Virus record (IMG/VR): IMGVR_UViG_3300035698_013060
Span: 62,001-126,000 of that record
Length of the DNA stretch: 64,000 bases
Reading direction: 5' to 3' (one strand)
Under the pieces are notes generated by a model that made no database searches, was not told the origin of the DNA, and was given only the letters and a program-made list of their open reading frames with translations. Shown piece after piece: positions 1-62,032 of this stretch. Made by a program: the position numbers and the translations under genes. Position 1 is the first letter of the stretch; each line of letters begins with the position of its first letter.

Positions 1-821
1 GGACTTGCTATGGTGATCTTTGGAGAGTTAACAAGGACATGCATGTCGGCATCGTTGCCGTACTGTTCTTGACCAGTCAGTTCACCCAGAGGCTTCTATC
101 GGCAAAGCATCTACTTCAGACCCGTTCTCCTGACTTGGATTGGGGTGAGAAGTTCTTGATGGCATTTTCTGTTGATAGATCCATCGTCACAGTCCTCCCG
201 GACTTCAATGCCACGTTGGTTTTAGATGACGATGACGTCGAAGACGACGAGAGTACTGGAGAGAAGTACATCACCGGCATGACCTTGACTACCTCGTCGA
301 GGGAACTCAGGATTCCACTCCCAGCCCAACTGTATTTCACTGATGACTTTCAGAAAGCCCTACCAGGTTTCAGGACATCAGAGGGAAAGTTCGAAATCAA
401 ACTCAAGGACTTCGTTGATGAGGTCATCTTCTCAGTGTTCATCCAGAACGAGGAGATCACTCAGTCTCTCAATCAGATCAAGGCGTTGATCGAAAACAAG
501 GATCATCTTGGGGCCGAAACGATTGATGAGATGGTAAGCATGATGTTCGGTCTGCTCAGTGGCAACGGTATCTTGTTGGACATGATTCACATCGAGTGCA
601 TCATGCGGAACTTGATACGGGATCCGGAAGACATCTCCGAAAGGCCGGACTTCCATACGGAATCACCGGACTACGTCATCTTAAGGCTGGCTGACTCCAT
701 CCTTCACGGGAAGAGTGTCACCGTCGGTCTTTCGTTCGAAAATCTCAAACAGCAGCTTAACTCAGCCAGGACGTTCCGTAAGGAAGGTTCCTCATTGATA
801 GACTGCTTCTTCGAAAGGTAG
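1..821 (+). CDS. rpoC: Non-virion RNA polymerase beta' subunit, C-terminal part (AR9 gp154-like); 5'-truncated by window edge
   Basis: Frame is open from the window start: TCYGDLW (tail of the CxxCYG Zn motif), trigger-loop-like GIVAVLFLTSQFTQRLLSAKHLL, and IHIECIMRNL (cf. KHIEVIVRQM). Confidence 0.9.
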   Translation, partial: TCYGDLWRVNKDMHVGIVAVLFLTSQFTQRLLSAKHLLQTRSPDLDWGEKFLMAFSVDRSIVTVLPDFNATLVLDDDDVEDDESTGEKYITGMTLTTSSRELRIPLPAQLYFTDDFQKALPGFRTSEGKFEIKLKDFVDEVIFSVFIQNEEITQSLNQIKALIENKDHLGAETIDEMVSMMFGLLSGNGILLDMIHIECIMRNLIRDPEDISERPDFHTESPDYVILRLADSILHGKSVTVGLSFENLKQQLNSARTFRKEGSSLIDCFFER

Positions 822-827
822 GGAAAC

Positions 828-1256
828 ATGGCGACGGAAGCGAAAAGAGAGTGGATGTCCGAAGCTCTGAAATACATGTGGGACAAACTGCTGGGAGTCG
901 TCAGCGGGAATCTTCTCGAAGATGACGTTCTTGCCGTTATGCTTAAGATAGAGGAAACGATCCTCTATAACGGGTACTCTGTTAAGTACGGAAGGGCTAG
1001 AGACAAGGCTCCACACCAGATCATCAAGATCTATGAGACCCCAAAGGGATCCAAACAGTTTGCAGTGTTTACGATGCTGTTGGGTGGCGAATCCTCCAAA
1101 AAGATCATCGACGACAACAACCAGGAACGCCTTATGCTAGGTGAGATCTGGGATGATAGTCGAGGTAAGAAACGGAAGATTGGTCCTGGTAAAAAGGGTC
1201 ATCGGAGAGAGGAGAATGATAAGAATGCAAGTAATGATAAACCTCCTTCAGTCTGA
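828..1256 (+). CDS. Hypothetical protein
   Basis: ORF directly after the rpoC-like gene; its 3' end overlaps the next gene. Confidence 0.6.
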   Translation: MATEAKREWMSEALKYMWDKLLGVVSGNLLEDDVLAVMLKIEETILYNGYSVKYGRARDKAPHQIIKIYETPKGSKQFAVFTMLLGGESSKKIIDDNNQERLMLGEIWDDSRGKKRKIGPGKKGHRREENDKNASNDKPPSV

Positions 1257-2043
1257 AGAGACAGTGCTTAAAGAGACCTGGAATTCAATTCTGGATCTAT
1301 GTTATCATTGTGTGGCTGGAGATGTTAAAAGGGCTCGTGAAAGAACCCTTGAGGGTTTGGAACTCTATATCGCATCTCTAGGCTACTCCGTTGACTTCGT
1401 CTCTGCGGCAAAGGAACAAGGTCCTAACTACCTTGAGTTAGTACACTGGCCTCTAAAAGGGGAATGTCAGTTCATCAACTATAAGTTCTCAATTTGTAGG
1501 GGTCATCCCAACGACCCTCTCAAACTTATCATCGATGCCAACAACAACGCCAGAAAAGATTTGGTGGAACCTCTGAGAAGCGGAGCCAATAATCACCGCA
1601 AGGTGATTAGAGACAAGGCTGGAAGGCCCTTCAAGCCTCATCTCCCAGACCCGAAGCTGGATACTACATCCAAGGTTGAGGCTGATAGAGTCATAGCCAT
1701 GGAGATGTCTGAGGGAGACCCGATCGAATTCTGTGAGATCTGTCCTTCATTGGAAGGGTGTATCGTCAGAGTTGAGAAGTGCGACTTGAAACCTGAGAAA
1801 GTTGGAGTCGTGTATTGGGTGCAAGGTCAGAATGTCCATACCAAGAACAAGGGGACAACCATCGAGTTCAGGGTATGGGGAAAGACTCTCGACAAATCTG
1901 GGACCATCATTCGTATTCCAGACAAGAGCCAAAGTACAAGGAAAGAGAAAGATAAAGTCTCTACCTTTCCGTGCACCAACATCAAAGTGATCGCTGACAG
2001 TTTGATCCGTTATCGCGGACAACTGGAAAAAGGAGGTAAGTAG
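1216..2043 (+). CDS. Hypothetical protein
   Basis: GAGGAG RBS before ATG 1216, in frame with ORF 1141-2043. Confidence 0.7.
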   Translation: MIRMQVMINLLQSEETVLKETWNSILDLCYHCVAGDVKRARERTLEGLELYIASLGYSVDFVSAAKEQGPNYLELVHWPLKGECQFINYKFSICRGHPNDPLKLIIDANNNARKDLVEPLRSGANNHRKVIRDKAGRPFKPHLPDPKLDTTSKVEADRVIAMEMSEGDPIEFCEICPSLEGCIVRVEKCDLKPEKVGVVYWVQGQNVHTKNKGTTIEFRVWGKTLDKSGTIIRIPDKSQSTRKEKDKVSTFPCTNIKVIADSLIRYRGQLEKGGK

Positions 2044-2651
2044 TGAGAGGACAGAGATCAGAAGAAATCAAGCACTTGTTCAACATGGCTGTCGTCGCCA
2101 TGAGGGACCCGAAGAAGTCTGGTGAACAACTCCGTCAGATCGCGTCCGGCCTGGAAAGGCTGGCATATATGGAAGGGTTCATGCCTGATCCAGTTCTCGA
2201 CGACGACGGTAAAGTGATCGCCATTCGAGCGATGGTATCGCTGTTTCATCCGCAGAAGGCGGATCCGGAGTTTATGTTCGATCCGGACAACGCAGAACGG
2301 TTGGAAGAGCTCAAGAAAAAGCGGGTGAAAGATCTTCGCAAGAAGAAGCGTGCGGAGGGAAAAGAACCCAAACCTAAGAAAGAGCAATACCACCGAAGCA
2401 AAGACCCGGACAAGTTGAACGCTCTGAAGGACCAGGCACTGGCGATGGATTCAGAGTTAGCCCTGGAGAACTTCAAGCATTCTTTCAATGCCGGAGTCTG
2501 TGAAGTGATGGATGGTCGTAAGACTCTTCGTATCGTGGTTTCTGGATTGATCCGAGATGCGAGGACTAGAAAGCTCCGAGTTACCGGGGTTTATACGGAC
2601 GGTGGCGTCGGAGGTGCCGCTCGTTACTTGGAGAAGTGTACGTTCGTGTGA
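2043..2651 (+). CDS. Hypothetical basic protein
   Basis: AGGAGG RBS; TAG/GTG overlap with the upstream gene. Confidence 0.75.
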   Translation: MRGQRSEEIKHLFNMAVVAMRDPKKSGEQLRQIASGLERLAYMEGFMPDPVLDDDGKVIAIRAMVSLFHPQKADPEFMFDPDNAERLEELKKKRVKDLRKKKRAEGKEPKPKKEQYHRSKDPDKLNALKDQALAMDSELALENFKHSFNAGVCEVMDGRKTLRIVVSGLIRDARTRKLRVTGVYTDGGVGGAARYLEKCTFV

Positions 2652-2674
2652 TCTTTATCGGTCCGTGAGACAAC

Positions 2675-2710
2675 AGACGGAAGGGGCTTTTAAGCCCCTC
2701 CGTCTTTCTT
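2675..2710 (+). terminator. Intrinsic terminator
   Basis: agacgg-a-aggggct-ttta-agcccct-ccgtct followed by a T-rich tract. Confidence 0.8.
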
Positions 2711-2733
2711 CCTCGTAATTTGTGCTTTCTAGA

Positions 2734-2745
2734 AACATACAATGG
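2734..2745 (+). promoter_or_regulatory. Putative late promoter (AACA-N4-AT-NN) for the actin operon
   Basis: AACATACAATGG lies just after a terminator and before the RBS/ATG at 2773. Confidence 0.5.
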
Positions 2746-2772
2746 ATTAGCATGAACGAAAGAGGAACCGAC

Positions 2773-3231
2773 ATGAACATATACCAACAGTTTCAGACGT
2801 TCCTCGAGGACTTTAACTCGAACTACCCGAGGAATTCGCCGAGATGCAAGTCTACAGGGTGTAACGAGCTAGAATGGAGAGGTACTGGGTATTGTTACAA
2901 GTGCCTAGATTATACCCTCCAGAAACAGATCCTTGAGAAAATGAAGGCCGTTGAAGCCGCCCTTGGAGGCGAGACACTGGACAAACTCAAGGCCGCACAA
3001 GATGCTTTAGCTGACGGTATTACCGTCAGATCTATAGAGGGGGATTTACCTCATAAAGTCCTTCCACGGAAGATATCTGCTGTTGAGGATGATAGTCCTG
3101 GGTTTGTACCTAGCGACATTGGGAATGCAGACGCAGATGTCAGCCTCAAAGGGAGTTCGACAAGCTCCAACAAGAAAAATGTGGCTAATGCCGCTGCTGC
3201 ACTCAAGAAAGCGAGCGACGGCGGCCCATAG
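2773..3231 (+). CDS. Hypothetical protein with Cys cluster (CxxxxC...CxxC), coiled coil and low-complexity tail; candidate actin partner
   Basis: AGAGGA RBS; immediately upstream of the actin-like gene. Confidence 0.7.
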   Translation: MNIYQQFQTFLEDFNSNYPRNSPRCKSTGCNELEWRGTGYCYKCLDYTLQKQILEKMKAVEAALGGETLDKLKAAQDALADGITVRSIEGDLPHKVLPRKISAVEDDSPGFVPSDIGNADADVSLKGSSTSSNKKNVANAAAALKKASDGGP

Positions 3232-3240
3232 GGGACGTCG

Positions 3241-4422
3241 ATGAAACCGTTCCAAACAGCGAGCTTCAGAAGAGACATGACAGTCAACCTGAACCTCGGC
3301 TCTCCGAGGAAAGCGAAAACAGAAAGACCTAAACCGGCATCGCGAAAGCCGATGAATAGAGGACGTAAGTCTATGCCAACTGTAACTAAGACGACACCAA
3401 CCCCGAAAGCAGTTCCCCCTGTGGAGACTACTGCGAAGGTCATGCCTATTGGGCTCGACGTCGGGACTATGAATCTCGTATCCGCCAGAATGATTGGCGA
3501 TGGCGTGGAGACTTCCACCCTTAGGAACGTATTCCTGGAGATCCCGGAGGAATACGCTGGACAAATGGACCTGGAGAAGGTCAGCTATGCCAAGATCGAG
3601 GACAAGCTGTACGTTCTCTCCGAAGAGGCATTCACATTCGCTAACATCTTCAACCAAGAAGCCAAGCGTCCGATGCGAGAGGGTATGATCTCTCCCGAAG
3701 AGTTGGACTCCGCAGACATTCTCGCGGTTATGCTTCGGGAACTGATTGGAAAAGGTGATGGCGAGAAGCCATGTTGCTACTCGATTCCTGCCGACCCGAT
3801 TGATAGCGACGTGAAAGTCGTATATCACCGGGATATCTTCCGCCGCATCATCACGTCACTCGGTTACAAGGCGATTCCTCTCAATGAGGGAGTGGCCATC
3901 GTATACTCTGAATGTGCTGGTGAGGGATTCACGGGTATCGGTATCAGTTTCGGTGGCGGAATGACAAACGTCGGCGTCTCGTTCAAAGGCGTTGAAGTGA
4001 TGTCGTTCTCGTGTGCCCGTGGTGGTGACTGGATCGATAGGAATGCAGCCTCTTCCTTGGGTCAGGTTCCCAACCGTCTTACGATGATCAAAGAACGTGA
4101 AGACTTCGACTTGAATGACTTCTCTCAGGGGAAGCGTAAGGAACGGCGGATGAAAGAAGCCTTGACGTATTACTACAAGGACCTCATCGGCTACACTGTA
4201 CGTCACATCGTCAAAGGTCTGGACGGAATTGACACTGAGTTCCCTGAAGACGTTCCAGTAATCATCTCCGGTGGAACATCCAAGGCGAAGGGCTTTGTCG
4301 AATTGGTAGGCCAAGCTATCGAGGAACATGAGTTCCCCTTCGACATCAAGGGAGTTCGTCACGCTGAGAACCCACTCACAGCCACAGCCGAAGGGTGTTT
4401 GATCAACGCTCTGAAGGAATAG
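3241..4422 (+). CDS. Actin-superfamily ATPase, volactin-like, with a basic/Pro-rich N-terminal extension
   Basis: Phosphate-1 GLDVGTMN, connect-1 PLNEG, phosphate-2 GISFGGGMTN, ARGGDWID, adenosine ISGGTS; FANIFN and PADPIDSD motifs recalled from haloarchaeal volactin. Confidence 0.9.
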   Translation: MKPFQTASFRRDMTVNLNLGSPRKAKTERPKPASRKPMNRGRKSMPTVTKTTPTPKAVPPVETTAKVMPIGLDVGTMNLVSARMIGDGVETSTLRNVFLEIPEEYAGQMDLEKVSYAKIEDKLYVLSEEAFTFANIFNQEAKRPMREGMISPEELDSADILAVMLRELIGKGDGEKPCCYSIPADPIDSDVKVVYHRDIFRRIITSLGYKAIPLNEGVAIVYSECAGEGFTGIGISFGGGMTNVGVSFKGVEVMSFSCARGGDWIDRNAASSLGQVPNRLTMIKEREDFDLNDFSQGKRKERRMKEALTYYYKDLIGYTVRHIVKGLDGIDTEFPEDVPVIISGGTSKAKGFVELVGQAIEEHEFPFDIKGVRHAENPLTATAEGCLINALKE

Positions 4423-4429
4423 AGATATG
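4408..4429 (+). repeat. 22-bp gene-junction direct repeat, copy 1
   Basis: gctctgaaggaatagagatatg; 21/22 identical to 4958-4979. Confidence 0.9.
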
Positions 4430-4972
4430 TTATTCTACGATACCGACATACTACAAGAGGGTTGGTGGAAGGGCTTTTTAACTCAAATCTCTGGAGATGT
4501 GGACGGAGCTTTCACTCATTTTGGAATCATGCTCTCTGTCAATCCTGATAGGGGTCTCAACAAGACCGTGAAGATCGCGAAGGAGATGATTCCTGAGATT
4601 AAGAAGATCTCCAGTTTCAAGCTTACGGATCAACAAGAGAATATCGCTAGAATATCGATCGAGAAAGACAGCAGCGACAAGAATGCGTTTTTCCTCTTGA
4701 TGAAAACCCGTGATGGAGTGATGCCGTGGGCTCAGGGAAAGAAGTGGAGTAATAAGCCCGTTTATGACAGAAGTAAGGAAGTAGCTGACATGATGGCTAC
4801 TGCCAACAACGGAAAAGAGCTAGCCGCTATTCTGGAGAAAGCTGTTGATAAGGCTGAAAGAATGATGGGGGTCTTCACTAATGAAACTGACCGATATTGT
4901 AAAAGAAGTATCGCTGTCGGACTGGTGGAGATCATGACGCAGATAAGACACCGAATTGCTCTGAGGGAATAG
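4427..4972 (+). CDS. Hypothetical protein with MLFYD...LQE N-terminus (putative internal head protein)
   Basis: N-terminal motif shared with the proteins starting at 4977, 14060 and 53605. Confidence 0.75.
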   Translation: MLFYDTDILQEGWWKGFLTQISGDVDGAFTHFGIMLSVNPDRGLNKTVKIAKEMIPEIKKISSFKLTDQQENIARISIEKDSSDKNAFFLLMKTRDGVMPWAQGKKWSNKPVYDRSKEVADMMATANNGKELAAILEKAVDKAERMMGVFTNETDRYCKRSIAVGLVEIMTQIRHRIALRE

Positions 4973-4979
4973 AGATATG
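4958..4979 (+). repeat. 22-bp gene-junction direct repeat, copy 2
   Basis: gctctgagggaatagagatatg. Confidence 0.9.
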
Positions 4980-5673
4980 CCTTTGTTTTATGATAGAGAA
5001 ATACTGAATGAATCCCCCTTCTCCGAAGTCGGATATCAGGGATTTACCCTCGATCTTCAAGGACAAGTCAGGTAACATCGCTATCGTCGAAGATAAGAAG
5101 GGTTACAAACCCCAGGAAGCTCTTAAGCTTTGGAAGAAGATTTCCACTGTGAAGGGGATGAAGTCTTACCTCAAGGGAGCTAGCGCGAGGAGAGTCTACT
5201 TCAAAAATGAGTGGGATGAGCTCTTGAATCCTGATACTTCACCACATAAAGATGAGCTCTTGGATTCAGTAAAAAGGCTTAAGCTACACTTCATCGAAGA
5301 TATAGGTAGCGATGAACTGTACTTCTCCATGGTAGACGGGAAGATCTATGAGCTATGGTCTGGTGAATACACTCTCTCTGTATGGGAAGAGAACTGGGGT
5401 CGATACGTACATGCAAAGACCGGAGGACTTTTTGGTGAAGCTCCTCCAGAAAAGGAAGAAGGAAACTTCTGGAAGAACGTAAGGAACATTGGCAGATTTG
5501 TTGGCATGGTTCCTTTCGTGTTCACCGGAATACCGTATATTCTTTGGGACAAGTATCGGTGGGAGAAGGAAATGGAAAGAAAGCACGGTAAGGGAGCTTC
5601 TAAGAATATGAAGTATACGATCCCTGACTGGGCAATGAATTTTATGACAGTTGAAGAAGATTGCCAAGAATAG
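4977..5673 (+). CDS. Hypothetical membrane-associated protein (MPLFYDREILNES...), apparently frameshifted at the C5 run 5014-5018
   Basis: ATG 4977 has the repeat-borne RBS and the FYD motif, but this frame stops after 32 codons; the long ORF 5008-5673 is in the +1 frame; hydrophobic segment FVGMVPFVFTGIPYILW. Confidence 0.6.
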
Positions 5674-5744
5674 AGACTCTTAAGAATAGGAGTCTGTCTG
5701 AAGTAAAGAGGAAGCCGTCACAAACCGAAAAAGGAAAACGGACA

Positions 5745-6119
5745 ATGACACAGAACCTCTATGACGCGAACTACATAGACAAGATCGAACTCATCAAGGT
5801 CGCACAAAAGTACGACCTCGACGCGAACGCAGTGGCAGAAGCAGACACTCTTGATGCTCTCCTGAAGCAGCAGGAATTGATCCACAAAGCCGCCCGAAAG
5901 AAAGATCCCAACTTCTGCAACTCTGACGCCCTGTTGAAACTGCTGCGTCAGCTGGATGCTGTGAGAGCTGCTGATCTCGAAGTCGCTCTTACTGAATGCG
6001 AGAGCAAAAGAGATTTCAAGCGGTGGAAGCACGATGCTCATGATGAGCTCGAGAAGGCCCAGATCAGGAACAGAGAACTCTATGGGAATGCTGATGGGGA
6101 GACTGATGTCCCACGTTAG
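5745..6119 (+). CDS. Hypothetical helical protein
   Basis: AAGGA RBS before ATG 5745. Confidence 0.7.
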   Translation: MTQNLYDANYIDKIELIKVAQKYDLDANAVAEADTLDALLKQQELIHKAARKKDPNFCNSDALLKLLRQLDAVRAADLEVALTECESKRDFKRWKHDAHDELEKAQIRNRELYGNADGETDVPR

Positions 6120-6151
6120 AGGTGAATGAATTTCTACACGGAGAACCGATA

Positions 6152-6159
6152 CATATTAT
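6152..6159 (+). promoter_or_regulatory. Putative early promoter core CATATTAT
   Basis: Recurrent intergenic NATATTAN motif; followed by a leader hairpin at about 6165-6206 and a run of small accessory genes. Confidence 0.55.
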
Positions 6160-6232
6160 TGAGCAGTCACGGCCTCCTGGATTGTCCAGAAGGAACATCC
6201 GTGATTAGAGAGAGAACGGTAAAGGAAAAGAG

Positions 6233-6637
6233 ATGAGAAATCTTTTCGTCACCGTCCTGATCGCCGTCCTGTTGGTCTTCGCCCTGGCTGCGCTTAGCGG
6301 GTCCGGAGGCGTATCGTCGGAAGAGGGGGTCTTAACAGTCCTTCTCGCTGACGGTCCTCCCCTGGATCCGACGCTGCTGACTGAAGATTATTTACAGGAC
6401 ATTGTAACGAGGGCCGTAGCGCCTGTATACACCGAGTGGGAGTTCCGGTACATCCGGGATACTTCGGTTGTGATCCAAACGGACCAGGATAACAGTCTGT
6501 CGAATTCGCAAAACACTCGGAAAGAAGCTACAACCGCCAACGACGGAAGGCGCCTCATTCTCAAATGTCCGTTCGAAGTGGTTGGCTACACTTCTGAGAT
6601 GAAACAATACCTTTATGGCCCCAAAGCAGGTTGCTGA
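6233..6637 (+). CDS. Secreted/membrane protein with signal-peptide-like N-terminus
   Basis: MRNLFVTVLIAVLLVFALAALS. Confidence 0.7.
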   Translation: MRNLFVTVLIAVLLVFALAALSGSGGVSSEEGVLTVLLADGPPLDPTLLTEDYLQDIVTRAVAPVYTEWEFRYIRDTSVVIQTDQDNSLSNSQNTRKEATTANDGRRLILKCPFEVVGYTSEMKQYLYGPKAGC

Positions 6638-6735
6638 ACTCGTCGAAGCCTAGTATTTACTTATACGTGCTCGACAAGGAATCTTCCTCCCGAGATGATG
6701 TGTGGGACCGAACGGGACCATAATCGAAGGTTGAT

Positions 6736-6772
6736 AAACGGGCTACCCCTCCGGGGGTAGCCCGTTTCTTTT
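6736..6772 (+). terminator. Intrinsic terminator
   Basis: aaacgggctaccc ... gggtagcccgttt followed by cttttc. Confidence 0.85.
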
Positions 6773-6814
6773 CACAGAAGTAACGACAATACCGAGAAAG
6801 ATAAAGAGGAAAAC

Positions 6815-7204
6815 ATGAGTAAGAAAAAAATCTGCGGAGAGGTAGTACTCGCCATCGGTATCGATGCTACCGGAATACGTATTTGTACCCAAGAACACAA
6901 TACGGATCACATTCACGACGATCCAAAATCAGCCGCCATCACTAGGGTTGCGAGACCGAACGAGAGGTTTATCGTCCTCAGTGACGGTGCTATCATTCTG
7001 GATCGAGCTTCAACGTTGAAGATCGAGTATGGGAATTGGGGTGAAGTCCCTGGGTGTCCTGTCGAAGACTGGGCTACCGAAGTCTCTAACGGTGACACAC
7101 GTCAGAGTTATTGGGAATGGGTCGTTGCCAGGGAGGAGGAAAATGAAGATTTCGAGAATGGCTACTTGAGCTTTGGGTCGCACTTTCAAGAAAATACCGA
7201 CTAA
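6815..7204 (+). CDS. Hypothetical protein
   Basis: GAGG RBS; EVSNGDTRQSYWEWV-type phage motif. Confidence 0.7.
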   Translation: MSKKKICGEVVLAIGIDATGIRICTQEHNTDHIHDDPKSAAITRVARPNERFIVLSDGAIILDRASTLKIEYGNWGEVPGCPVEDWATEVSNGDTRQSYWEWVVAREEENEDFENGYLSFGSHFQENTD

Positions 7205-7490
7205 CCCGACTCCATGTGACAAATGTACTTACTACAGAGAAATCTGGGATCCTCAACCAGGAATAGATTGGAACAGGTGTACTCACCCTGACAGAAAGAA
7301 TTCTGATGGAGACTATCCACAGGCTCGTGAGAAATGTGAGTCCTTCAGTCCATTTATTCAGATCAAAATCCCAAAGGTAAATACCGAGGAATTTTATCAT
7401 GGCTTATGTCGAGCCGCACGAATCACCAAACGACTGGTGTCACGTCTGTGGAAAAAGGTCAGATCAACACGCCACGATCACATATCCTGA
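7173..7490 (+). CDS. Hypothetical Cys-rich protein (start uncertain)
   Basis: CDKC...C...C; see finding on the in-frame TGA at 7167. Confidence 0.45.
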   Translation: MGRTFKKIPTNPTPCDKCTYYREIWDPQPGIDWNRCTHPDRKNSDGDYPQAREKCESFSPFIQIKIPKVNTEEFYHGLCRAARITKRLVSRLWKKVRSTRHDHIS

Positions 7491-7638
7491 CGACGCAGAG
7501 CATGCGGATGAAGGAGAGCATTGGCGTGTAAGACCTGGACCTGGAATCAACAAACTGAGGATCTGTGCCCAGTGCGCGAAGGTGGTGGCTAAAGTAGCCT
7601 CCAACCCTGATGGTCCTAAATCACGAAAGAGACTCTAG
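7399..7638 (+). CDS. Small zinc-finger protein
   Basis: CHVC...CAQC; GAGG RBS. Confidence 0.7.
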   Translation: MAYVEPHESPNDWCHVCGKRSDQHATITYPDDAEHADEGEHWRVRPGPGINKLRICAQCAKVVAKVASNPDGPKSRKRL

Positions 7639-7639
7639 T

Positions 7640-8146
7640 ATGCCACGAGTGCATCACGTAAAAGCCGCCAAAGACTATCTCCAAGAGGGGATTAAAAAAG
7701 GCGAAATGTATTTCTGGGCTAAGCCTGGACGTCGGGGTCGGAAGATCCGATACAAAAACCGTCCCAGGCCGTCCCAGTTGACTGGTAGTGCGTTCCTCAC
7801 CGATGCCTATGGGCTCCGGGAGGAGATGGAAGACGCCAGCCCGGGAACCCGCGAGGATCTTCAATCAATGGCCGAGGATTGGAAGACACGAGCAGAAGAG
7901 CTCCGGGACCAATGTCAAGAGTCTCTCGACAATATGCCAGAACACTTGCAAGATACCAGCGAGACCGGTCAGATTCTCACTGAAAGAATCGACAATCTCG
8001 ATAACTTCGCCAACGAAATCGACGGCATCGACTTTGAGACAGTGGATGATGTTGAAGACGATGACGATGAGGGTAAAACTCGGGAAGAGACTGACGAGGA
8101 TGCCGTAAATCGTCTCACAGAAGAGATGCCTGATCTAGAAGTGTAA
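7640..8146 (+). CDS. Hypothetical protein (basic N-terminus, acidic coiled-coil C-terminus)
   Basis: ORF coupled to the upstream stop; SLDNMPEHLQ-type phage motif. Confidence 0.75.
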   Translation: MPRVHHVKAAKDYLQEGIKKGEMYFWAKPGRRGRKIRYKNRPRPSQLTGSAFLTDAYGLREEMEDASPGTREDLQSMAEDWKTRAEELRDQCQESLDNMPEHLQDTSETGQILTERIDNLDNFANEIDGIDFETVDDVEDDDDEGKTREETDEDAVNRLTEEMPDLEV

Positions 8147-8178
8147 GAACAAGGACAGATGTCCTAGAGAAGAAACAG

Positions 8179-8559
8179 GTGGAAGCGGAGTTTCTAATCA
8201 AGAAGAAGGTAGACGAGCAGTTTCTAAGGGACATCGCTATCACCGCCATCGAAGGTGGTACCGGGTACTGGGCTTCTGTCAGTGAGTACAGAGCTGATGT
8301 AGCGGCTAACGAAATCATTGTCGTTATTCATTTTTATGAGGGAGAAGATGACGGCGACGATCAGCAGACCAGAAAGCTCACCCTCATGGATATCGCAGAA
8401 GGAATCAAAAGAGTTCTCAACCCGGAGTTCAGGGTTGGCGACCAGATCAAAGGGTGTTTAATCCAAAGTATCTGCAGTAATGATGCTGGGATGGCTGATG
8501 CTGATGTGGCTGATGTGATCGTACAAGCGGCGCTATTCGGAGAAATCGTCTACGGATAA
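8179..8559 (+). CDS. Hypothetical phage protein
   Basis: EGGTGYWA...DADVADVIVQAALFGEIVYG phage motif. Confidence 0.75.
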   Translation: MEAEFLIKKKVDEQFLRDIAITAIEGGTGYWASVSEYRADVAANEIIVVIHFYEGEDDGDDQQTRKLTLMDIAEGIKRVLNPEFRVGDQIKGCLIQSICSNDAGMADADVADVIVQAALFGEIVYG

Positions 8560-8609
8560 CCCTAAACTACAACGGCCTTATATTCAGGTCTTTAAAAGGT
8601 GAGAACTAA

Positions 8610-9176
8610 ATGACAACAATACAATTAGCGGGCCTCTTAAAGGCCAGAACAGCCATGTCTGAGGCGATGACTCACCTGGACGCAGAACTAGCAATGGTCA
8701 TGGAAAAATCGACGGAACCCAAGACAGGCCCAGTCAAAAAAGAGGCCGACTTCAAAGGGGAGAACATCCCTAAGGAGTTGGCCCAGGTTTGTGTCGAGTT
8801 CGTGAACCTCCATTGGAGTGACCACGCATACTTCTCCTTGAAAAACACGGATGATAACAGACTTACATTCGAGGCCAACAGATTCTACTTCGAGATGGGA
8901 CTCAGTCTTCCAATCTTTCACGGGGACGGAGAATACTTCGTCGTTAATCCTGGAGAAAGGCTCAGTCTGGACGTACCTACCTTACTGAAGATTCAGGAAG
9001 GAGTCGTCAGAGATAATGACGATCCTTCTGATACATGGTCTTCTCTACGAGGTATCTCGGAATTGGACAGACTCTTCTCCGTTATCAATGGGTTTGACTG
9101 GCAATGGTGGCCCAAGCTACTAGAACTAGTGAATGAGAATGATCCCGTGAAGTACACGGAGATAGATTATGGATGA
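8610..9176 (+). CDS. Hypothetical protein
   Basis: 188-aa ORF with RBS. Confidence 0.7.
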   Translation: MTTIQLAGLLKARTAMSEAMTHLDAELAMVMEKSTEPKTGPVKKEADFKGENIPKELAQVCVEFVNLHWSDHAYFSLKNTDDNRLTFEANRFYFEMGLSLPIFHGDGEYFVVNPGERLSLDVPTLLKIQEGVVRDNDDPSDTWSSLRGISELDRLFSVINGFDWQWWPKLLELVNENDPVKYTEIDYG

Positions 9177-9441
9177 GTGTCAAGATCCCAGATGTACCTC
9201 TCTAATGATCAGATGCGGATCTCTTGGTCCTAAGCATGGTCTATGCTGGAATTGTAGACTCCGATACATGACCAGTGACGAGAAGCTTACGGAACTGAAA
9301 GGTCACTTCGCTCATCTGAGAAACAAGGGGAGGTACGGATACGAGATTCGTAAACACCAACTAGCACTAGATGCGGTACGTCGAGAGATTTGCCGAAGAA
9401 GTGATAGTGAAGCTGAGAGGGAATTCGAAGCATGTCGATGA
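9169..9441 (+). CDS. Hypothetical Cys-containing protein
   Basis: Overlap-coupled ORF. Confidence 0.6.
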   Translation: MDECQDPRCTSLMIRCGSLGPKHGLCWNCRLRYMTSDEKLTELKGHFAHLRNKGRYGYEIRKHQLALDAVRREICRRSDSEAEREFEACR

Positions 9442-9638
9442 TAATATTAGGTGAGAAGGACGGGGAACTAGACATGGTCAACGCTGACAACGTTGTGAGC
9501 GTTAAGACTGAGGTCAAGTCAATAACCTTGAACTTGACGGATGGAGACTCGATAAAGATCGAGTTCGACGAGATTGATGAATATAAGAAGGCCGTCAACT
9601 TCATTCGGAATAAGGTCTGGAATTCGATAAAACTGTAG
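9432..9638 (+). CDS. Hypothetical small protein
   Basis: Overlap-coupled ORF. Confidence 0.6.
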   Translation: MSMIILGEKDGELDMVNADNVVSVKTEVKSITLNLTDGDSIKIEFDEIDEYKKAVNFIRNKVWNSIKL

Positions 9639-9650
9639 GAGAAATACCTG

Positions 9651-11084
9651 ATGAGAGAGATAGTCGTGCACAACACGCTCATCACGGTGAGCGAGTATGA
9701 GGAAACACCTCGGATAGAGAGGACTCTTTCTGCCTGGGATGAGTCTCGGCACGAAGTCTCCTTTCAAGCGTTTCGGGTAGTATCCATGCCAGATGGTTCA
9801 ACTACTATGGTCGTCCCTCGGTGTTATCCTACTAAGTGGCTCATGGAAGCCTTTCCAGACCACAGGTTGATCCATGCCAAGAGAGACTTGGCAAGTCCCA
9901 GGCGGGTTGACATGAATTGTCTCTGTGACCCGAGAGATGACGCCCAAAGAGAGGCGCTAGAATGGTTGGATGGTAGAGAAGCTTTCTCTCAACATGTCTT
10001 GGAACTTCGTACGGGTATGGGTAAGACGTACATCGCTTTGAAGTACGCCTGTGACTACGGGTACGCAACCCTAGTTGTAGTCCATAACACAAACGTCTTA
10101 GAGCAGTGGCTCTCGCGCATAACAGAGCTGACGGACGTGGATCGTGAAGAGATCGGAGTAGTTCAGGGGTTTAAGAGCTTGGACAAGTGCGCCAGCGACC
10201 CGAACCTCAAGTTCTACGTGGCAATCCATAAGACTCTAGCTAGTGCTATTGAGCGCGACCCGAAGAGTCTAATGGAGTTCTGTAAGAAGACCGACGTTGG
10301 GATGAAGATCATCGACGAGGCTCACATTGAAATGTACGACACTTGTCGAGTGGATCTTCACTCAGACGTTCCTGTCAATCTGTACCTCACCGCTACGGCG
10401 GAGAGGACTAACTGGCGGGAGAACAAGTTGTACGGCTTTATGCTCCCTGTGTATTACGCATGGGGTGGTGGGTCTGCCAAGGTCAGTGAAGAAGACAAGT
10501 ACCACCAAGTCTACTCAGTAAGGTACGAAACCAAGACACTCCAGTCGACTCAGGTGGGAATGCATAACAAGCATGGCTTCAACTTACCTAAATGGGCTGA
10601 GAATAGCCTTGGTCATCTGGATGTAATATTCCCGATGCTTATCAAGTATATTGGAAAGTTCAATGAGGACGGCAGGATCCACTGCATTGTCTTGAAGACT
10701 CTGTCACAATGCTCTGCATTCAGGGCAGGACTCATAGCCAGCGGAATTGTGGATTGTGACATCGGGATGTTCAGTAGTCTAGGTCCTAAGAAGAAGGAAG
10801 AAAGACGGCAGGAATTGTACAAACGGTTCGTGATAACGACGGAAAAGTCCTTAGGGACAGCCATCGATACGGACATTGACGTAATGTACAACTTCATTCC
10901 AATATCTTCCAGACCGGTGATCCTACAGCTTCTGGGTAGACTCCGGAACAACAGGGCCGCTATCTTCGTGGACTTCACTGATTCTTCCATAGAGGCATGC
11001 GTTGAAATGATGAAGCGCAGACGGCAGTACCTAAGGAAGGTGGCCGTCCGTTACGTCGAATGGAAGCACAAACACCAGTCGTGA
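9651..11084 (+). CDS. Superfamily 2 (DEAH; ResIII/UvsW-like) helicase
   Basis: Walker A LRTGMGKT, IIDEAH, LTAT, QLLGRLR. Confidence 0.9.
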   Translation: MREIVVHNTLITVSEYEETPRIERTLSAWDESRHEVSFQAFRVVSMPDGSTTMVVPRCYPTKWLMEAFPDHRLIHAKRDLASPRRVDMNCLCDPRDDAQREALEWLDGREAFSQHVLELRTGMGKTYIALKYACDYGYATLVVVHNTNVLEQWLSRITELTDVDREEIGVVQGFKSLDKCASDPNLKFYVAIHKTLASAIERDPKSLMEFCKKTDVGMKIIDEAHIEMYDTCRVDLHSDVPVNLYLTATAERTNWRENKLYGFMLPVYYAWGGGSAKVSEEDKYHQVYSVRYETKTLQSTQVGMHNKHGFNLPKWAENSLGHLDVIFPMLIKYIGKFNEDGRIHCIVLKTLSQCSAFRAGLIASGIVDCDIGMFSSLGPKKKEERRQELYKRFVITTEKSLGTAIDTDIDVMYNFIPISSRPVILQLLGRLRNNRAAIFVDFTDSSIEACVEMMKRRRQYLRKVAVRYVEWKHKHQS

Positions 11085-11144: not shown

Positions 11145-11963
11145 ATGCTCGAAGAAGGCAGCGTTCTCCCGCCTGAGATGCGGGAAGTCGAAAAACGCCT
11201 GCTCTATGTCAATAATTCCCTTCGAGTCTCTGCCGTCGTAAAGCTATTCAACAGCGATCGACGTAAGAAGGAGACTCCAGCTCTCAAGGTAAGGCATTGG
11301 GGTAAGAGAGGATCGTACTCGTTGGATGTATCAACTAGGGACTTCTTAGTATTCAAATACATAGCTAAGGAGTTCAAGTACAACCAGGATATCTACTTTG
11401 CCCCGCTGGATATCCCGTATTTGGCTGACATACTGGACAGAGCATGTGAATGGTTCCAGCTTAATTCTGTGGCGTTCCAGAGGCATCATGACCGGATATC
11501 CGTCAATAAGAAGAGTTACCTTAAGAGCATGCAATCTGCCATGGGTAAATCCTTCGTCCTCAAACCGGCCGTCAACGAGACGGATGATGGGGATGTAGCA
11601 GTCGTGAGGTTCTGGTTTGGAGAAGGAGACTATGCTGAGTTGAAGTCCGGAGAGATGTGGTCATTAGCTCAATATGTCAGAAGGATTGACATAGCGGCCA
11701 TAAGTGTCGGACTCTTAGCTTTAGCAACTTCATGTCACGGCCCACAGAGGGCTGGACCTGAAATCGACCCCGATATGAACCTCAGAATAACGGAGACCGA
11801 CGTACTAACCATGTCTCTGGAGGAGCTGATTGAATTCTGTAACGGCTCCGAATCCAGCGTGGACTTTGAGATCGATGACGTCGAGAATTTCGGTGAAGAA
11901 GACAAGGACTACCTCCGAAAGCAGATAATCGAGAGGCTAAGGAAGGAGAGAACGGATGCCTAA
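11145..11963 (+). CDS. Hypothetical jumbo-phage protein
   Basis: AAGGAGG RBS; 272 aa. Confidence 0.75.
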   Translation: MLEEGSVLPPEMREVEKRLLYVNNSLRVSAVVKLFNSDRRKKETPALKVRHWGKRGSYSLDVSTRDFLVFKYIAKEFKYNQDIYFAPLDIPYLADILDRACEWFQLNSVAFQRHHDRISVNKKSYLKSMQSAMGKSFVLKPAVNETDDGDVAVVRFWFGEGDYAELKSGEMWSLAQYVRRIDIAAISVGLLALATSCHGPQRAGPEIDPDMNLRITETDVLTMSLEELIEFCNGSESSVDFEIDDVENFGEEDKDYLRKQIIERLRKERTDA

Positions 11964-12678: not shown

Positions 12679-13272
12679 CTACTGGAGAGCAGCTTCGACG
12701 GTCTCGATCATCTCAATTTTCGTGGATCTCATGTCGAGTTCGATGGGAGGTTCCATTTCGGCGGCGTAGGCGACGAGTTCTTTCTTCGTCATGGCTTCGA
12801 TGAGGCTGAGGTCAACTTCCTCTTCATCGACTTCCTCTTCATCGACTTCCTCTTCGTCAACTTCCTCTTCGTCAACTTCCTCTTCGTCAACTTCCTCTTC
12901 GTCAACTTCCTCTTCGTCAACTTCCTCTTCGTCAACTTCCTCTTCGTCAACTTCCTCGAGTTTCGGAGTCTCGAGAATGGCTTCATCTTCCTTGGGCTCC
13001 GGAATGATTTCTTCCGCAGGTTCTATGCCACCAGGGACATCGTCCACGGCCCCGGGATTGGGAGCATCCGGAATCGAAGCTTCCACCTTCTTCGGTGTGG
13101 ATGGTCTTGGGGCCTTCCTGGTCTCTTTGATGATCACCTTGTATCCCATACTCTTCAACTTGTCGGCAACCGACTTCGGTACCGAGATGTTGCTCAGGAT
13201 AGGTCCCCTACGGTTGATGAAGGGGATAACCCCGGAGTGGTTTACCGTGATAAGAACTTTTGGATCTGCCAT
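12679..13272 (-). CDS. Protein with (EEEVD)n acidic tandem repeat and C-terminal Rho-N/HeH-like helical domain
   Basis: Ten EEVD units; LSLIEAMTKKELVAYA...STKIEMI tail. Confidence 0.8.
   Translation of the reverse strand: MADPKVLITVNHSGVIPFINRRGPILSNISVPKSVADKLKSMGYKVIIKETRKAPRPSTPKKVEASIPDAPNPGAVDDVPGGIEPAEEIIPEPKEDEAILETPKLEEVDEEEVDEEEVDEEEVDEEEVDEEEVDEEEVDEEEVDEEEVDEEEVDLSLIEAMTKKELVAYAAEMEPPIELDMRSTKIEMIETVEAALQ
12811..12957. repeat. 15-bp tandem repeat (gtcaacttcctcttc), about 10 copies
   Basis: Visible directly; two copies read atcgacttcctcttc. Confidence 0.97.
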
Positions 13273-22465: not shown

Positions 22466-24124
22466 TTAACTCTCCTTTTCAAAAACAAGGCATCCGCAAT
22501 CATAGATCCTGTAAAATCCATTAGCCTTCATATTTTCACCTTCTGAAATAGATGAATCAAAGCTTTCAAGCGTATTTGATAAAAGATGCTTTTGATATTT
22601 AAGTCTAGATTCTCTTCTCTTCATTATTCCAACATATGAGTACGAAGGTGTTGACTTTCTCAGTAGCTTGAATCCTAAAGCCTCGTACATTCTACCATTC
22701 CCCCAACGAAGATCACAGTAGCTCACGATCCTTTTAGGAGATTTCCATCTCTCGAAAGAGGCTAGCAGCTTTCCAGCTCCACCCATTACTCTGTGTCCTG
22801 GAAGGGTAGCATATCTTAGCATCTCAGACCCACCGCCGCCGAATCTAGCTTTCCCGAAGGACATGACTGCTACTAGTTCATCTTCCAGAAAAAGTCCAAG
22901 ATTATTAGAAGAGGCTACATCTCCTTGAGTGTGGTTTGCCGTCATGAAGTCTCTTCTTTCTTTGGCGCTAATTTGGAAGACTTCACAGTCTCTAGCTGCT
23001 ACCTTCCAATCGTCATTTCCAAGCAGACTTCGTATCCTGGAACAACAGGCGTTTCTTCTATCTCTCCATTCATCCTCAAAAATATGGATTAGTCTAACCC
23101 CAGTGGCTTGACAAGCTTCGGTCTTTTCTAAGAGATGTCCAGAATCTCTAAACTCATCACTATGCCACCTGAGTCCGTCGAATTCGAAACCTATGGACAA
23201 TGAAGGAACAAAGACATCTATCTCTTTCCCTGAAAGGACTGAGCGGTCACCTTGGACTGGAGGAGATGTATCAATATTTTTGCAACACTCTGACACAAAA
23301 GTCAAAAGTTCGTCTTCGCCTCTAGATATCTGGACTCCACACCTAGGACAACCCTTACCTTGGAGATGATTGACAGGAGTCTGTTCAAATGAACCATGCT
23401 TCGTGCATACTATAGTTACGTTCGAATGACACCCTGAGTAATGACATTTCGAATAATCATACTTAGTTCCATGGACTTCAACTGAACGGTGTATGAACGA
23501 AGTGGCCGCTGCAATCGACTTACTTTTTCCTCTTTTCATCTTTGCACAAACAGGACATCCAGTTCCTTGGTTCATGTGAAGATTAGGGGTTTGATCAAAA
23601 GGACCATGGTTAGGACATACTATAACGACCTTCTTATTGGTACTTACTATTTCTGAGTTTGAGTAGTCATATTTCTTACCATGTTTTATCTTAGACTTCC
23701 TAACGAATTCTTTCTTAGTGAGTCTAGCTCTCCCTACACATGTAGAGCAACCTTTCCCAGCTATATGGTCTGCTGGACGTTGTTCAAAATCTCCATGCTT
23801 TGGACATACTATGACAACAGGTGTACAGTTATTAATGTACAAAACTTTTGAGTAGTCATACTTATTTCCATGCTTTTTTCTAGCTTTATGAGAAAACTCT
23901 TCCACACTGAACTTTTTTCGATTGGAACAAATCGGACAGCCGTGACCTCTTTCATAGTGCCGATACGGATGCTGTTCGAAATCTCCGTGCTTTGGACATG
24001 TTATAATAACCTTATTTTTCTGCCCAGTATACTTTGTCTTATCATAGTTGTACTTATTTCCATGCATTTTTCTTGATCTATGAACGAATTCCTCAGTAGT
24101 AAGTCTAGTGTATCTCATTTTCAA
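22466..24124 (-). mobile_element. Free-standing homing endonuclease (four DUF723-like Zn repeats, Vsr/PD-(D/E)XK-like nuclease, Hef-like C-terminus)
   Basis: Four HGxKYxYxK...CxxHGxFxQxPxxH...GCxxC repeats; EIDVFVP...GFEFDGLRWHS; visibly more AT-rich than neighbours. Confidence 0.8.
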
Positions 24125-28372: not shown

Positions 28373-28423
28373 CTGTGCTGTCCTCTCGCGATTACGTTTC
28401 GTATGTATTGATTTTTTTGAAGT

Positions 28424-28435
28424 CAATTCTCTGTT
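28424..28435 (-). promoter_or_regulatory. Putative late promoter AACAGAGAATTG
   Basis: AACA-N4-AT-TG upstream of the virion-type beta gene. Confidence 0.6.
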
Positions 28436-32789: not shown

Positions 32790-32878
32790 ACCAAAAGAAG
32801 AATGAACCTGGACGGGGCAACCGGAACCCCCGGTTGTCCCGTTCCAATTTTTTTGAAGATAAATCAGGAGGAAAGACC

Positions 32879-41338: not shown

Positions 41339-41419
41339 CAATGCAGTGACTTCCCATTCAATGAATGGGATTTTCACTACAGAGCCTAGACAGACGGGAA
41401 CGCATCGAGGAGAGAACGC

Positions 41420-61825: not shown

Positions 61826-62032
61826 CTACTCCTCAGATCTACTTCTTATCAAGCACTCTTTCGGAAAAGGACACTTCCTTTGTTCGTTATTGTTTCTACA
61901 AGTTTTTGCTGCAGCCTTCCAACACTTTTGAGAACATGCGAATCCAGTGTGTTTACATCTTCTAAGCGAGAGGATGTATCCTCCACCAACTATTTTCTTT
62001 CCACATTCGAGACACACATTTTTCATTTTCAT
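61826..62032 (-). CDS. Small Cys-rich protein
   Basis: CLEC...CSQKC. Confidence 0.55.
   Translation of the reverse strand: MKMKNVCLECGKKIVGGGYILSLRRCKHTGFACSQKCWKAAAKTCRNNNEQRKCPFPKECLIRSRSEE

Follow-up and report, generated by a model that had tools for sequence, protein, structure and literature searches.

A volactin-family actin gene and its candidate adaptor gene in an AR9-like giant phage from salt lakes

The stretch analyzed here (the window) comprises 64,000 nucleotides, positions 62,001 to 126,000 of the 241-kb IMG/VR record IMGVR_UViG_3300035698_013060, and harbors two adjacent genes on the + strand, a small partner gene (2773-3231) and a volactin-family actin gene (3241-4422). Both lie in an accessory island of 15 ORFs at a position where AR9 has a single gene. 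On its left edge, the island is bordered by the 3′ part (3-821, + strand) of the gene for the non-virion RNA polymerase (nvRNAP) β′ C-terminal subunit, a conserved backbone gene that encodes 614 residues and starts upstream of the window. It matches phrog_3015 (RNA polymerase beta subunit, E 7e-70) and is 36.6% identical over 580 residues to AR9 127982-129688 (BI022_gp153). The right edge is an SF2 helicase gene (9651-11084, + strand; phrog_16), which is 28% identical over 488 residues to AR9 130433-131845 (BI022_gp155) and 40% identical to the helicase that directly follows the same gene pair in L192, another AR9-type phage. The three ORFs upstream of the pair (828-2651) were suspected to be paralogs, but BLAST shows no similarity among them. 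Four salt-lake metagenome runs hold the identical DNA with no variants.

The pair is separated from the preceding genes by a G+C-rich hairpin followed by a T-rich run (2672-2706, + strand), the probable terminator of the upstream transcription unit, which a terminator scan also found. Its predicted RNA fold has an energy of −25.2 kcal/mol (z −3.6), and none of 200 shuffled sequences folds as well; the GGGGC/GCCCC stem is conserved in L003, the AR9-type phage that carries the closest relative of the actin (76% identity). Downstream, four co-directional small ORFs of unknown function (4427-4972, 5008-5673, 5661-6119, and 6233-6637, + strand) may be co-transcribed with the pair, as there is no + strand terminator-like site between 4422 and 6736. 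None of them matches a Pfam or PHROG family above threshold, and the last has a hydrophobic N-terminus indicative of a signal or transmembrane segment. They are not conserved next to other copies of the pair, and their membership in the module is not established. A perfect 14-bp inverted repeat with a 4-nt loop (AAACGGGCTACCCC / GGGGTAGCCCGTTT; 6736-6767, + strand) is the probable end of the transcription unit.

A promoter-like motif, AACATACAATGG, occurs at 2734-2745 (+ strand), 39 nt upstream of the start codon of the partner gene. It resembles the AR9 late (non-virion RNA polymerase) consensus, AACA-N6-T[A/G] (PMC5312081). In this genome, AACA-N4-AT-N-[GA] occurs 34 times in upstream regions against 4.5 expected, and the stricter AACA-N4-AT-[TC]-[GA] occurs 29 times against 3.5 expected, an 8-fold enrichment. 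The site itself is a near match, having G where the consensus has T. However, the ten bases AACATACAAT are conserved in L003 within an otherwise diverged intergenic region. A k-mer scan first pointed to ATATTA as the key promoter word, but this marks a different motif class (AC-N2-3-ATATTA, 25 sites against 5.1 expected) that is not found upstream of the pair, and a sigma-70 promoter scan found no more sites than in shuffled sequence. No RNA data holding the gene were found, such that late timing rests on the motif alone.

The partner gene encodes 152 residues. It starts at ATG 2773, preceded by a Shine-Dalgarno sequence (aagagga, 2760-2766), and not at GTG 2722; the L003 homolog begins at the same MN(I/V)YQ, and the sequence upstream of that point has diverged. 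The AlphaFold 2 (AF2) model has a helix at residues 3-17 and a long helix at 42-82 (nt 2896-3018). A zinc knuckle, C25-X4-C30-X10-C41-X2-C44 (nt 2845-2904), precedes and overlaps the latter. A disordered linker spans residues 83-133 and includes an F111-V112-P113 motif (nt 3103-3111), and it is followed by a C-terminal helix at 134-148 (nt 3172-3216) that contains NVANAAAALKKA. Residues C25, C30, G39, C41, F111, P113, and L144 are invariant in six zinc-type homologs. The zinc knuckle only resembles the Zf_WRKY19/DUF5763 repeats, whose function is unknown. About 45 full-length relatives were found among 1.84 billion cluster representatives, while a word-based search with the protein recovered only itself, and a feature-based search with its head gave scores at or below 0.83, which is chance level. 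PHROGs has no family for either this protein or the actin.

The actin gene encodes 393 residues, of which the first 67 (nt 3241-3441) form an extension with 16 K/R, 3 D/E, and 10 P that precedes MPIGLDVG. The extension is coding. In L003 the frame is kept with in-frame indels, the other two frames are closed, and third-position changes (29) outnumber first- and second-position changes (15 and 19). It is modeled as disordered, with pLDDT below 50 for residues 1-64, and extensions vary in length and charge across the family. The actin-fold core (residues 68-393; nt 3442-4422, including the stop codon) contains GLDVGTMN (71-78), FANIFN (133-138), PADPIDSD (183-190), and ARGGDWID (259-266). The phosphate-1 (G75/T76), phosphate-2 (G238/G240), and adenosine (G344/G345/T346) motifs are invariant across 28 homologs, in which D73 and the catalytic E216 are also invariant or nearly invariant. 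The initial annotation had described a complete actin ATPase motif set, a Lys/Arg/Pro-rich extension of roughly 65 residues, and an upstream Cys-cluster protein with a C-terminal helix, both genes lying behind a late-type promoter motif, and every one of these features is present in the sequence.

Residues 68-390 match positions 1-321 of the 321-position Pfam Volactin model (PF25216) at 286 bits (E 6.4e-85) against a gathering cut-off of 35, and a six-frame search of the phage genome gives 286.4 bits. This model exceeds its cut-off in only 1 of 14 control genomes, and H. volcanii is among the four that match at all. In contrast, MreB_Mbl scores 12.6 bits (cut-off 27), FtsA scores 18.4 bits (below its cut-off), and NCBIfam MamK scores 11.9 (cut-off 400); there is no ParM-type hit in Pfam, NCBIfam, or PHROGs. 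The AF2 core has pLDDT above 90 and an actin fold with four subdomains, with Foldseek probability 1.00 to MreB, MamK, BeeR, and actin, although a sequence search of the PDB returned nothing relevant. In total, 1813 homologs were found. Identity is 39-44% to haloarchaeal members, 45-51% to Magnetococcales members, and 55% to a Desulfosarcina protein that could not be located on a contig; the list of cellular relatives is incomplete. The initial annotation had placed the protein closer to haloarchaeal volactin than to MreB, FtsA, or ParM. The family assignment holds, yet on the tree the protein does not group with the haloarchaeal volactins. The 35 haloarchaeal sequences form their own clade (support 100), while the window protein lies in a separate clade of 19 sequences with 13 Magnetococcales sequences and a few phage-like contigs (SH-aLRT 99). 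A viral clade of 51 sequences is monophyletic and deep (support 100). The tree is a quick, unrooted one without MreB or ParM outgroups.

The genome is complete and is that of an AR9-type jumbo phage, the type that the initial annotation had proposed. Its capsid protein has its best hits in AR9/PBS1 (40% identity over 98% of its length), and 57 of 259 ORFs hit AR9 in collinear blocks. Several phiKZ/AR9-type beta and beta′ RNA polymerase pieces are present, as well as a homolog of the fifth nvRNAP subunit of AR9 (26% identity over 454 residues, E 2.6e-38). Homologs of the AR9 dCMP deaminase and 5′(3′)-deoxyribonucleotidase are found with no Ugi hit; whether uracil replaces thymine in the DNA cannot be read from an assembly. 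A megablast search with 25 kb of the window found no match among cultured phages. The initial annotation had asked whether the rest of the genome encodes PhuZ or chimallin, and neither was detected: PF00091 gives 11.9 bits against a cut-off of 33, and phrog_4733 and PF22334 (PhuZ), as well as phrog_4795 and PF25677 (chimallin), give no match in the complete genome. Both chimallin models are centered on phiKZ-like members, and a very distant homolog could be missed. PBS1-type phages are reported to lack chimallin. Five other volactin-bearing huge phage records also lack PhuZ.

Absence of the upstream gene next to homologs had been named in advance as grounds for rejecting the initial interpretation, and the outcome is the opposite. 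A co-oriented ORF ending at the actin start is present in 159 of 165 homologous loci, and the six exceptions have the actin at a contig end. An HMM of the tail (F/Y-I/L-P, spacer, D-D/E-A-x-x-A-L-K/R-x-L-K/R-K) hits 117 of 4427 ORFs, of which 100 are the immediately upstream ORF and 13 more lie one gene further upstream; 113 loci carry the motif. In the window phage, it hits the partner ORF (E 2e-11) and no other ORF in the genome. Profile-profile similarity of the tails is 73-86% probability among the three viral groups and 53% between Magnetococcales and the zinc-type group, but only 24% or less (hhalign) to the haloarchaeal and Planctomycetota partners. The heads differ, and actin clades match head types. 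Partners have 1-2 transmembrane helices in Magnetococcales and 2-4 in haloarchaea (DUF7139), while the phage partners scanned have none and carry soluble heads, apart from one possible N-terminal hydrophobic segment in the phage-like contig L005, whose partner also keeps the zinc knuckle. A soluble head is not an absolute mark of phages, since one cellular-looking MAG contig (L191) also has a zinc-type, non-membrane partner. The pair sits at the same backbone position in three AR9-type phages (the window phage, L003, and L192), with actin identity of 52-76%.

Modeling of the actin with the C-terminal helix of its partner had likewise been proposed beforehand as a check. The predicted complex has an ipSAE of 0.41 (0.41, 0.48, and 0.01 in three runs, one of which thus failed) against a best control of 0.00. 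This is in the range classed as weak support, a mark reached by 58 of 80 solved complexes and 2 of 110 mismatched pairs, and whether the partner binds the filament is left undecided by it. The predicted interface involves partner residues 112 and 121-148 and actin residues 82-94, 163, 167, 195, 222-230, 249-251, and 384-392, corresponding to subdomain IA, the hinge, and IIA, and it includes the invariant G385 and L387.

On the basis of these data, the pair is proposed to be a two-gene filament-plus-adaptor module of a jumbo phage that forms no phage nucleus, a reading to which a probability of about 0.5 is assigned. In this view, the module is transcribed from a late-type promoter, and the actin binds ATP through its intact motifs and polymerizes into dynamic filaments. 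The partner probably dimerizes through its long helix, carries a small zinc-knuckle head and a flexible linker of about 50 residues, and docks its C-terminal F-V-P-plus-helix peptide, the likely actin-binding element, in the cleft between subdomains IA and IIA. In Magnetococcales and haloarchaea, the membrane partners would tie filaments to the membrane, whereas the soluble heads of the phage partners examined would tie them to a phage-chosen cargo or site and so organize infection in space. The analysis itself demonstrates the family membership, the intact motifs, the conservation and synteny of the pair, and the difference in partner heads. Polymerization is instead inferred from H. volcanii volactin, a protein about 40% identical that sits in another clade and forms dynamic filaments whose tips touch the membrane (PMC10869688). 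Filament assembly was not assayed here; it has been shown only for H. volcanii volactin-msfGFP, and no experiment exists on any phage member. The docking mode likewise rests on weak model support plus conservation, late timing on the motif, and the existence and identity of a cargo are also inferred, as no cargo was identified. The initial annotation is thus confirmed as an observation. Its interpretation, an actin-based analogue of the PhuZ spindle or a host-shape modulator with the upstream protein as adaptor, is partly supported: the family, the phage type, and the syntenic partner hold, but with no detectable chimallin or PhuZ there is no phage nucleus for such a spindle to center, and an effect on host shape is inference only.

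Among the alternatives, a takeover of the host cytoskeleton is possible but unlikely. The phage actin could co-polymerize with or replace a volactin-like system of the host, with the soluble adaptor competing with a membrane-anchored partner, and the result would be altered host shape, size, or division rather than movement of phage cargo. The nearest cellular relatives are bacterial, the clade with Magnetococcales is compatible with capture from a host that has the system, the phage tail motif is closest to that of Magnetococcales, making competition for the same site plausible, and volactin affects cell shape in H. volcanii (PMC10869688). However, a dominant-negative strategy needs one gene, yet phages keep both together with matching actin clades and head types, and the deep viral clade suggests a long independent viral history; the host is unknown, and so is whether it has a volactin system. 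A ParMRC-like machine that segregates the phage genome as an extrachromosomal element in a carrier or pseudolysogenic state, with the adaptor bound to a phage DNA site, is less likely still. The layout of an actin gene next to a small adaptor gene, which is that of ParM/ParR and of AlpC/AlpA, where AlpA binds phage DNA and AlpC, the zinc knuckle that could bind DNA, and the pseudolysogeny of PBS1-type phages, which was not examined here, are in its favor. In contrast, no iteron or centromere-like repeat array was found in window positions 1-9000 beyond short matches at chance level, the only promoter-like element is of the late lytic type, the protein is not in the ParM or Alp families by Pfam, and the same tail is attached to membrane anchors, not to DNA binders, in Magnetococcales and haloarchaea.

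Two further readings are considered improbable. A non-polymerizing actin-fold ATPase, for example a chaperone-like or EutJ-like enzyme with the upstream protein as its substrate or regulator, is suggested by EutJ among the fold matches (TM 0.64-0.66 normalized by target), but the whole Volactin profile is matched, the best fold matches are filament formers, and the founding member of the family polymerizes in vivo. A passenger pair with no role in infection, recently acquired in a variable island, would fit the location in the accessory island and the absence of the pair from cultured phages in the collection searched. Against it, the backbone position is kept in three diverged phages, the reading frames are intact, the promoter block is conserved, and 453 IMG/VR contigs carry a relative.

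A broader hypothesis, tentative and judged less likely than not, is that the pair is the viral form of an old, widespread cassette of bacteria, archaea, and large phages in which a volactin-type actin is joined by a partner with a universal C-terminal docking peptide. Cells would attach this peptide to a membrane anchor, making the DUF7139 protein the missing membrane tether of haloarchaeal volactin, and at least three lineages of large phages would have swapped the anchor for soluble cargo-binding heads. This would give them an actin-based transport or positioning machine that stands in for the PhuZ spindle in jumbo phages lacking PhuZ and a nucleus.

PhuZ tubulin is the well-studied paradigm for how giant phages organize the infected cell and goes with the phage nucleus; the present result points to a second, actin-based system. 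No paper in the library searched links volactin to phages. The 453 IMG/VR contigs with relatives include complete genomes of 277 kb and 436 kb and a 497-kb record estimated to be 94% complete. The same pair occurs in hundreds of other large phage contigs and in many bacterial and archaeal genomes, so it is probably an undescribed phage cytoskeleton. The comparison also names a candidate binding partner and docking peptide for the whole volactin family, whose binding factors were listed as unknown when volactin was described (PMC10869688).

Among the closest known systems is volactin (VolA, HVO_2015) of Haloferax volcanii, which shares the Pfam family over the full model length, the actin ATPase motifs, and, in haloarchaeal genes, a conserved co-oriented upstream partner gene. 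The phage protein differs in its clade, its 67-residue basic extension, its soluble zinc-knuckle partner in place of a DUF7139 membrane protein, and its origin in a virus of unknown, presumably bacterial, host; a role in cell shape is not implied. The closest functional precedent is AlpC/AlpA of Corynebacterium prophage CGP3, a phage-encoded actin-like protein with a co-transcribed adaptor that links the filament to something else and is needed for efficient phage replication. However, the actin subfamily and the adaptor are unrelated, the CGP3 pair is an early operon, and AlpA binds DNA in the operon's own promoter region. In the window phage, the adaptor gene precedes the actin gene, the promoter is of the late type, and no repeat or binding site is evident. 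The plasmid partition system ParM/ParR/parC also pairs an actin with a small adaptor, and ParR binds ParM in the IA/IIA cleft where the phage tail is predicted to dock, but parC-like repeats were not found and the adaptor gene is upstream rather than downstream. The PhuZ spindle of Chimalliviridae is likewise a phage-encoded cytomotive filament in jumbo phages with multisubunit RNA polymerases, yet it is built of a tubulin and not an actin. Finally, MreB, MamK, and BeeR, bacterial actins with solved filaments, are together with actin the best structural matches (TM 0.60-0.70 normalized by target) at only 15-20% identity.

The sequence analyzed here covers bases 62001-126000 of a 241,176-bp virus record with 127-bp exact terminal repeats, which CheckV rates as 100% complete. 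It originates from salt-lake metagenomes; sixteen runs contain at least part of the DNA, and the four compared with it directly carry it with no variants. The ORF at 3241-4422 (+) encodes a protein of 393 aa harboring each of the motifs listed in the initial annotation (GLDVGTMN, FANIFN, PADPIDSD, and ARGGDW.D), and the observation reported there is thus confirmed. Residues 68-390 match the complete Pfam Volactin model (PF25216, E 6.4e-85, 286 bits against a cut-off of 35). In contrast, FtsA (18.4 bits) and MreB (12.6 bits) fall below their cut-offs, and NCBIfam MamK scores 11.9 against 400. When the same Pfam model is run over 14 control genomes, it exceeds its cut-off in only one, and H. volcanii is among the four that give any signal at all. 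An AlphaFold model built on 28 homologs has pLDDT above 90 over the core and matches MreB, BeeR, MamK, and eukaryotic actin at TM 0.60-0.70 normalized by target, with 13-20% identity; no close structure has been solved. Residues 1-67 form a basic, proline-rich extension (16 K/R, 3 D/E, and 10 P) that is predicted to be disordered. The extension is translated, as the 76%-identical relative L003 keeps the frame through in-frame indels, the other frames are closed, and third-position differences dominate.

The upstream gene starts at ATG 2773 and encodes a partner of 152 aa. It consists of a short helix, a C25-X4-C30-X10-C41-X2-C44 zinc knuckle, a 40-residue helix, a disordered linker of about 50 residues, an F111-V112-P113 motif, and a C-terminal helix at 134-148. 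A profile of six such proteins finds about 45 full-length relatives among 1.84 billion cluster representatives. The remaining hits are proteins built of repeats of a similar small zinc finger (Pfam Zf_WRKY19/DUF5763), whose function is unknown.

The genome encodes a capsid protein, terminase, tail sheath, a split family-B DNA polymerase, and several split beta and beta' RNA polymerase subunits of the phiKZ/AR9 type. The assignment as AR9-type, made in the initial annotation, is correct. The best matches of the capsid protein are AR9 and PBS1 (40% over 98% of its length), followed by BpSp, the Staphylococcus S6 group, Listeria LPJP1, and Yersinia phiR1-37. Fifty-seven of 259 ORFs match AR9 by tblastn in collinear blocks, including a homolog of the fifth, promoter-recognizing subunit of the non-virion polymerase (nvRNAP; genome 130767-132509). 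The presence of PhuZ and chimallin had been singled out beforehand as a point to examine, and neither is detectable in the complete genome, although the chimallin models are centered on phiKZ-like phages such that a very distant homolog could be missed. This agrees with the published statement that PBS1 has the multisubunit polymerases but no chimallin. Only two tRNA genes are carried, tRNA-Arg(TCT) and tRNA-Lys(CTT), at genome positions 39118-39194 and 41383-41458 (9118-9194 and 11383-11458 in locus L013), both outside the window.

The AR9 late promoter consensus, AACA-N6-T[A/G], appears in this genome as AACA-N4-AT-[TC]-[GA], which occurs 29 times within 120 nt upstream of genes against 3.5 expected. 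These sites include positions upstream of the sheath gene, the virion RNAP gene, and the 2889-aa giant gene; examples in the window are 15374 (-), 28435 (-), 34069 (+), and 35768 (+). A second upstream motif, (A/G)AC-N2-3-ATATTA, occurs 25 times against 5.1 expected, for example at genome 60925 (upstream of the nvRNAP beta'-C gene) and at window 6153 and 41332. It recalls the AT-rich AR9 early promoter AAATATATATTAT and may mark early genes, but it is not present upstream of the actin module.

The module lies in an accessory island of 15 ORFs (window 828-9600), none with a confident family match, between the backbone genes for nvRNAP beta'-C and an SF2 helicase, which in AR9 are separated by a single gene. 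A strong hairpin terminator at 2672-2706 closes the preceding unit and is followed by AACATACAATGG at 2734-2745, one base off the late-promoter class. The block AACATACAAT is invariant in L003 within an otherwise diverged spacer. A perfect 14-bp hairpin at 6736-6767 probably ends the unit, which would then also hold four small ORFs of unknown function. Elsewhere in the window, a 552-aa HNH/homing endonuclease (22466-24124 (-); phrog_559, E 5e-126) lies directly beside the 1403-aa virion-type RNA polymerase beta gene (24215-28426 (-)). The polymerase genes of AR9 are likewise invaded by introns and homing endonucleases, whereas here the polymerase ORF looks uninterrupted. A 15-nt tandem repeat of 9.8 copies (GTCAACTTCCTCTTC, 96% matches) at 12811-12957 would encode an acidic EEEVD-type repeat if read on the minus strand, its strand and gene not having been assigned. 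An RCC1-like repeat protein (PHROG 'regulator of chromosome condensation', E 6e-26) is encoded at 32834-34057 (+), and a 674-aa protein with many short tail-fibre or collagen-like repeat matches is encoded at 35847-37871 (+).

The pair is conserved far beyond this phage. The actin has 1813 homologs in the large protein collection searched, with relatives on 453 IMG/VR contigs (12 of the 80 retrieved are over 200 kb), in at least 560 species genomes, a count in which cellular relatives are under-sampled, and in two published huge phages of 485 and 595 kb. One 297-kb viral contig (IMGVR_UViG_3300025141_000016; loci L070 and L075) carries two volactin-family genes about 155 kb apart, each with its own upstream partner gene with the tail motif. 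Absence of the upstream gene from homologous loci had been named as evidence that would count against the proposed module; instead, in 159 of 165 retrieved loci a co-oriented ORF ends at the actin start, and the six exceptions have the actin at a contig end. An HMM built from the C-terminal 54 positions of these partners, with the consensus ...EPTFIPS...VDDAAEALKALRKG, hits 117 of 4427 ORFs in those loci, of which 100 are the immediately upstream ORF and 13 more lie one gene further upstream. Within the phage's own genome it hits only the partner gene. Profile-profile comparison supports tail homology among the three viral groups (73-86% probability) and between Magnetococcales and the zinc-type group (53%), while the link to haloarchaeal and Planctomycetota partners is weak, at 24% or less.

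The partner heads differ between the cellular and phage genomes examined. Magnetococcales partners have 1-2 transmembrane helices, whereas haloarchaeal partners have 2-4 and match DUF7139. In the haloarchaeal loci (L127:2882-3838, L149:2978-3904, and about 30 others among L127-L184), the volactin gene is preceded by a co-oriented gene of about 300 aa whose product also has a cytoplasmic tail with VD(D/A)Q..(G/K)LK.LK-type repeats. It is a candidate membrane tether for volactin filaments that the volactin paper does not mention, although similarity of its tail to the phage motif is weak (hhalign 24%). The phage partners scanned show no hydrophobic helix, with the possible exception of that at locus L005, which has an N-terminal hydrophobic segment in addition to its zinc knuckle. 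They carry three types of soluble head, namely the zinc knuckle, an 'IKxPGLFLxIPG..PFRTPA' domain, and an 'IxC..IxDLGL.M.RG...S.DL' domain, and these follow the three viral clades on the actin tree.

On that tree, which is quick and unrooted, the window protein and L003 sit in a well-supported clade (SH-aLRT 99) with 13 Magnetococcales proteins and four other contigs that carry zinc-type partners, while the haloarchaeal volactins form a separate clade (support 100). A third AR9-type relative, L192, has the zinc-type pair directly upstream of the same helicase gene, and the module is therefore an inherited feature of this phage lineage. The zinc-type head is not exclusive to phages, however. 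A MAG contig with ordinary cellular neighbors (L191:5144-6618, GCA_975970845.1; guanylate cyclase, polysaccharide deacetylase, alanine dehydrogenase, and RecD2) carries a zinc-knuckle partner plus an actin 57% identical to that of the phage, which may hint at the host lineage, the host of this phage being unknown, or at a cellular origin of the zinc-type pair. Two archaeal MAG contigs, L118 (Thermoplasmatales) and L119 (uncultured archaeon), group inside a viral actin clade. The L118 partner lacks transmembrane helices and has the viral 'PGxxPFRTPA' head, while the region upstream of the L119 actin is not on its contig and its partner was not examined. They may be viral contigs binned into MAGs, or proviruses.

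H. volcanii volactin forms dynamic filaments that touch the membrane only with their tips, and its binding factors were unknown. A membrane protein with a cytoplasmic docking peptide, encoded next to the actin gene, would explain that geometry, and a phage version with a soluble head would tie the same filaments to something else. A complex prediction for the phage pair, an approach the initial annotation had put forward for the partner's C-terminal helix, gave ipSAE 0.41 (three runs: 0.41, 0.48, and 0.01) against 0.00 for all three controls. This is rated as weak support, the corresponding mark having been reached by 58 of 80 solved complexes and 2 of 110 mismatched pairs. The confident contacts involve adaptor residues 112 and 121-148 and, on the actin, subdomain IA (82-94, 163, 167, 195, and the C-terminal helix 384-392, which holds the invariant G385 and L387), the hinge helix (222-230), and IIA (249-251). 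This cleft is where ParR binds ParM and where WH2-type helices bind actin, a correspondence that was not tested here.

It is therefore hypothesized, with a probability of about 0.5, that the pair is a late-expressed filament-plus-adaptor module that positions a phage cargo or site. The family assignment, the conservation of the pair, and the difference in partner heads come directly from the sequence comparisons, whereas polymerization is inferred and the cargo is unknown; there are no experimental or RNA data. The interpretation in the initial annotation, in which an actin-based analogue of the PhuZ spindle or a host-shape modulator acts with the upstream protein as adaptor, is partly supported. 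Hijack of a host volactin system to alter cell shape or division is a tentative alternative. ParMRC-like partition of a carrier-state episome is unlikely, as no centromere-like repeats were found near the module, and a non-polymerizing ATPase or a passenger gene pair with no function in infection is considered more doubtful still.

Phage-encoded actins with adaptors are already known, as in AlpC/AlpA of prophage CGP3, and so are phage-encoded cytomotive filaments in jumbo phages (PhuZ); the general kind of system is therefore not new. What appears to be new is the family, since no paper in the library searched links a volactin-type actin to phages, together with the adaptor class with its shared docking tail and the breadth of the system across large phages that lack PhuZ.
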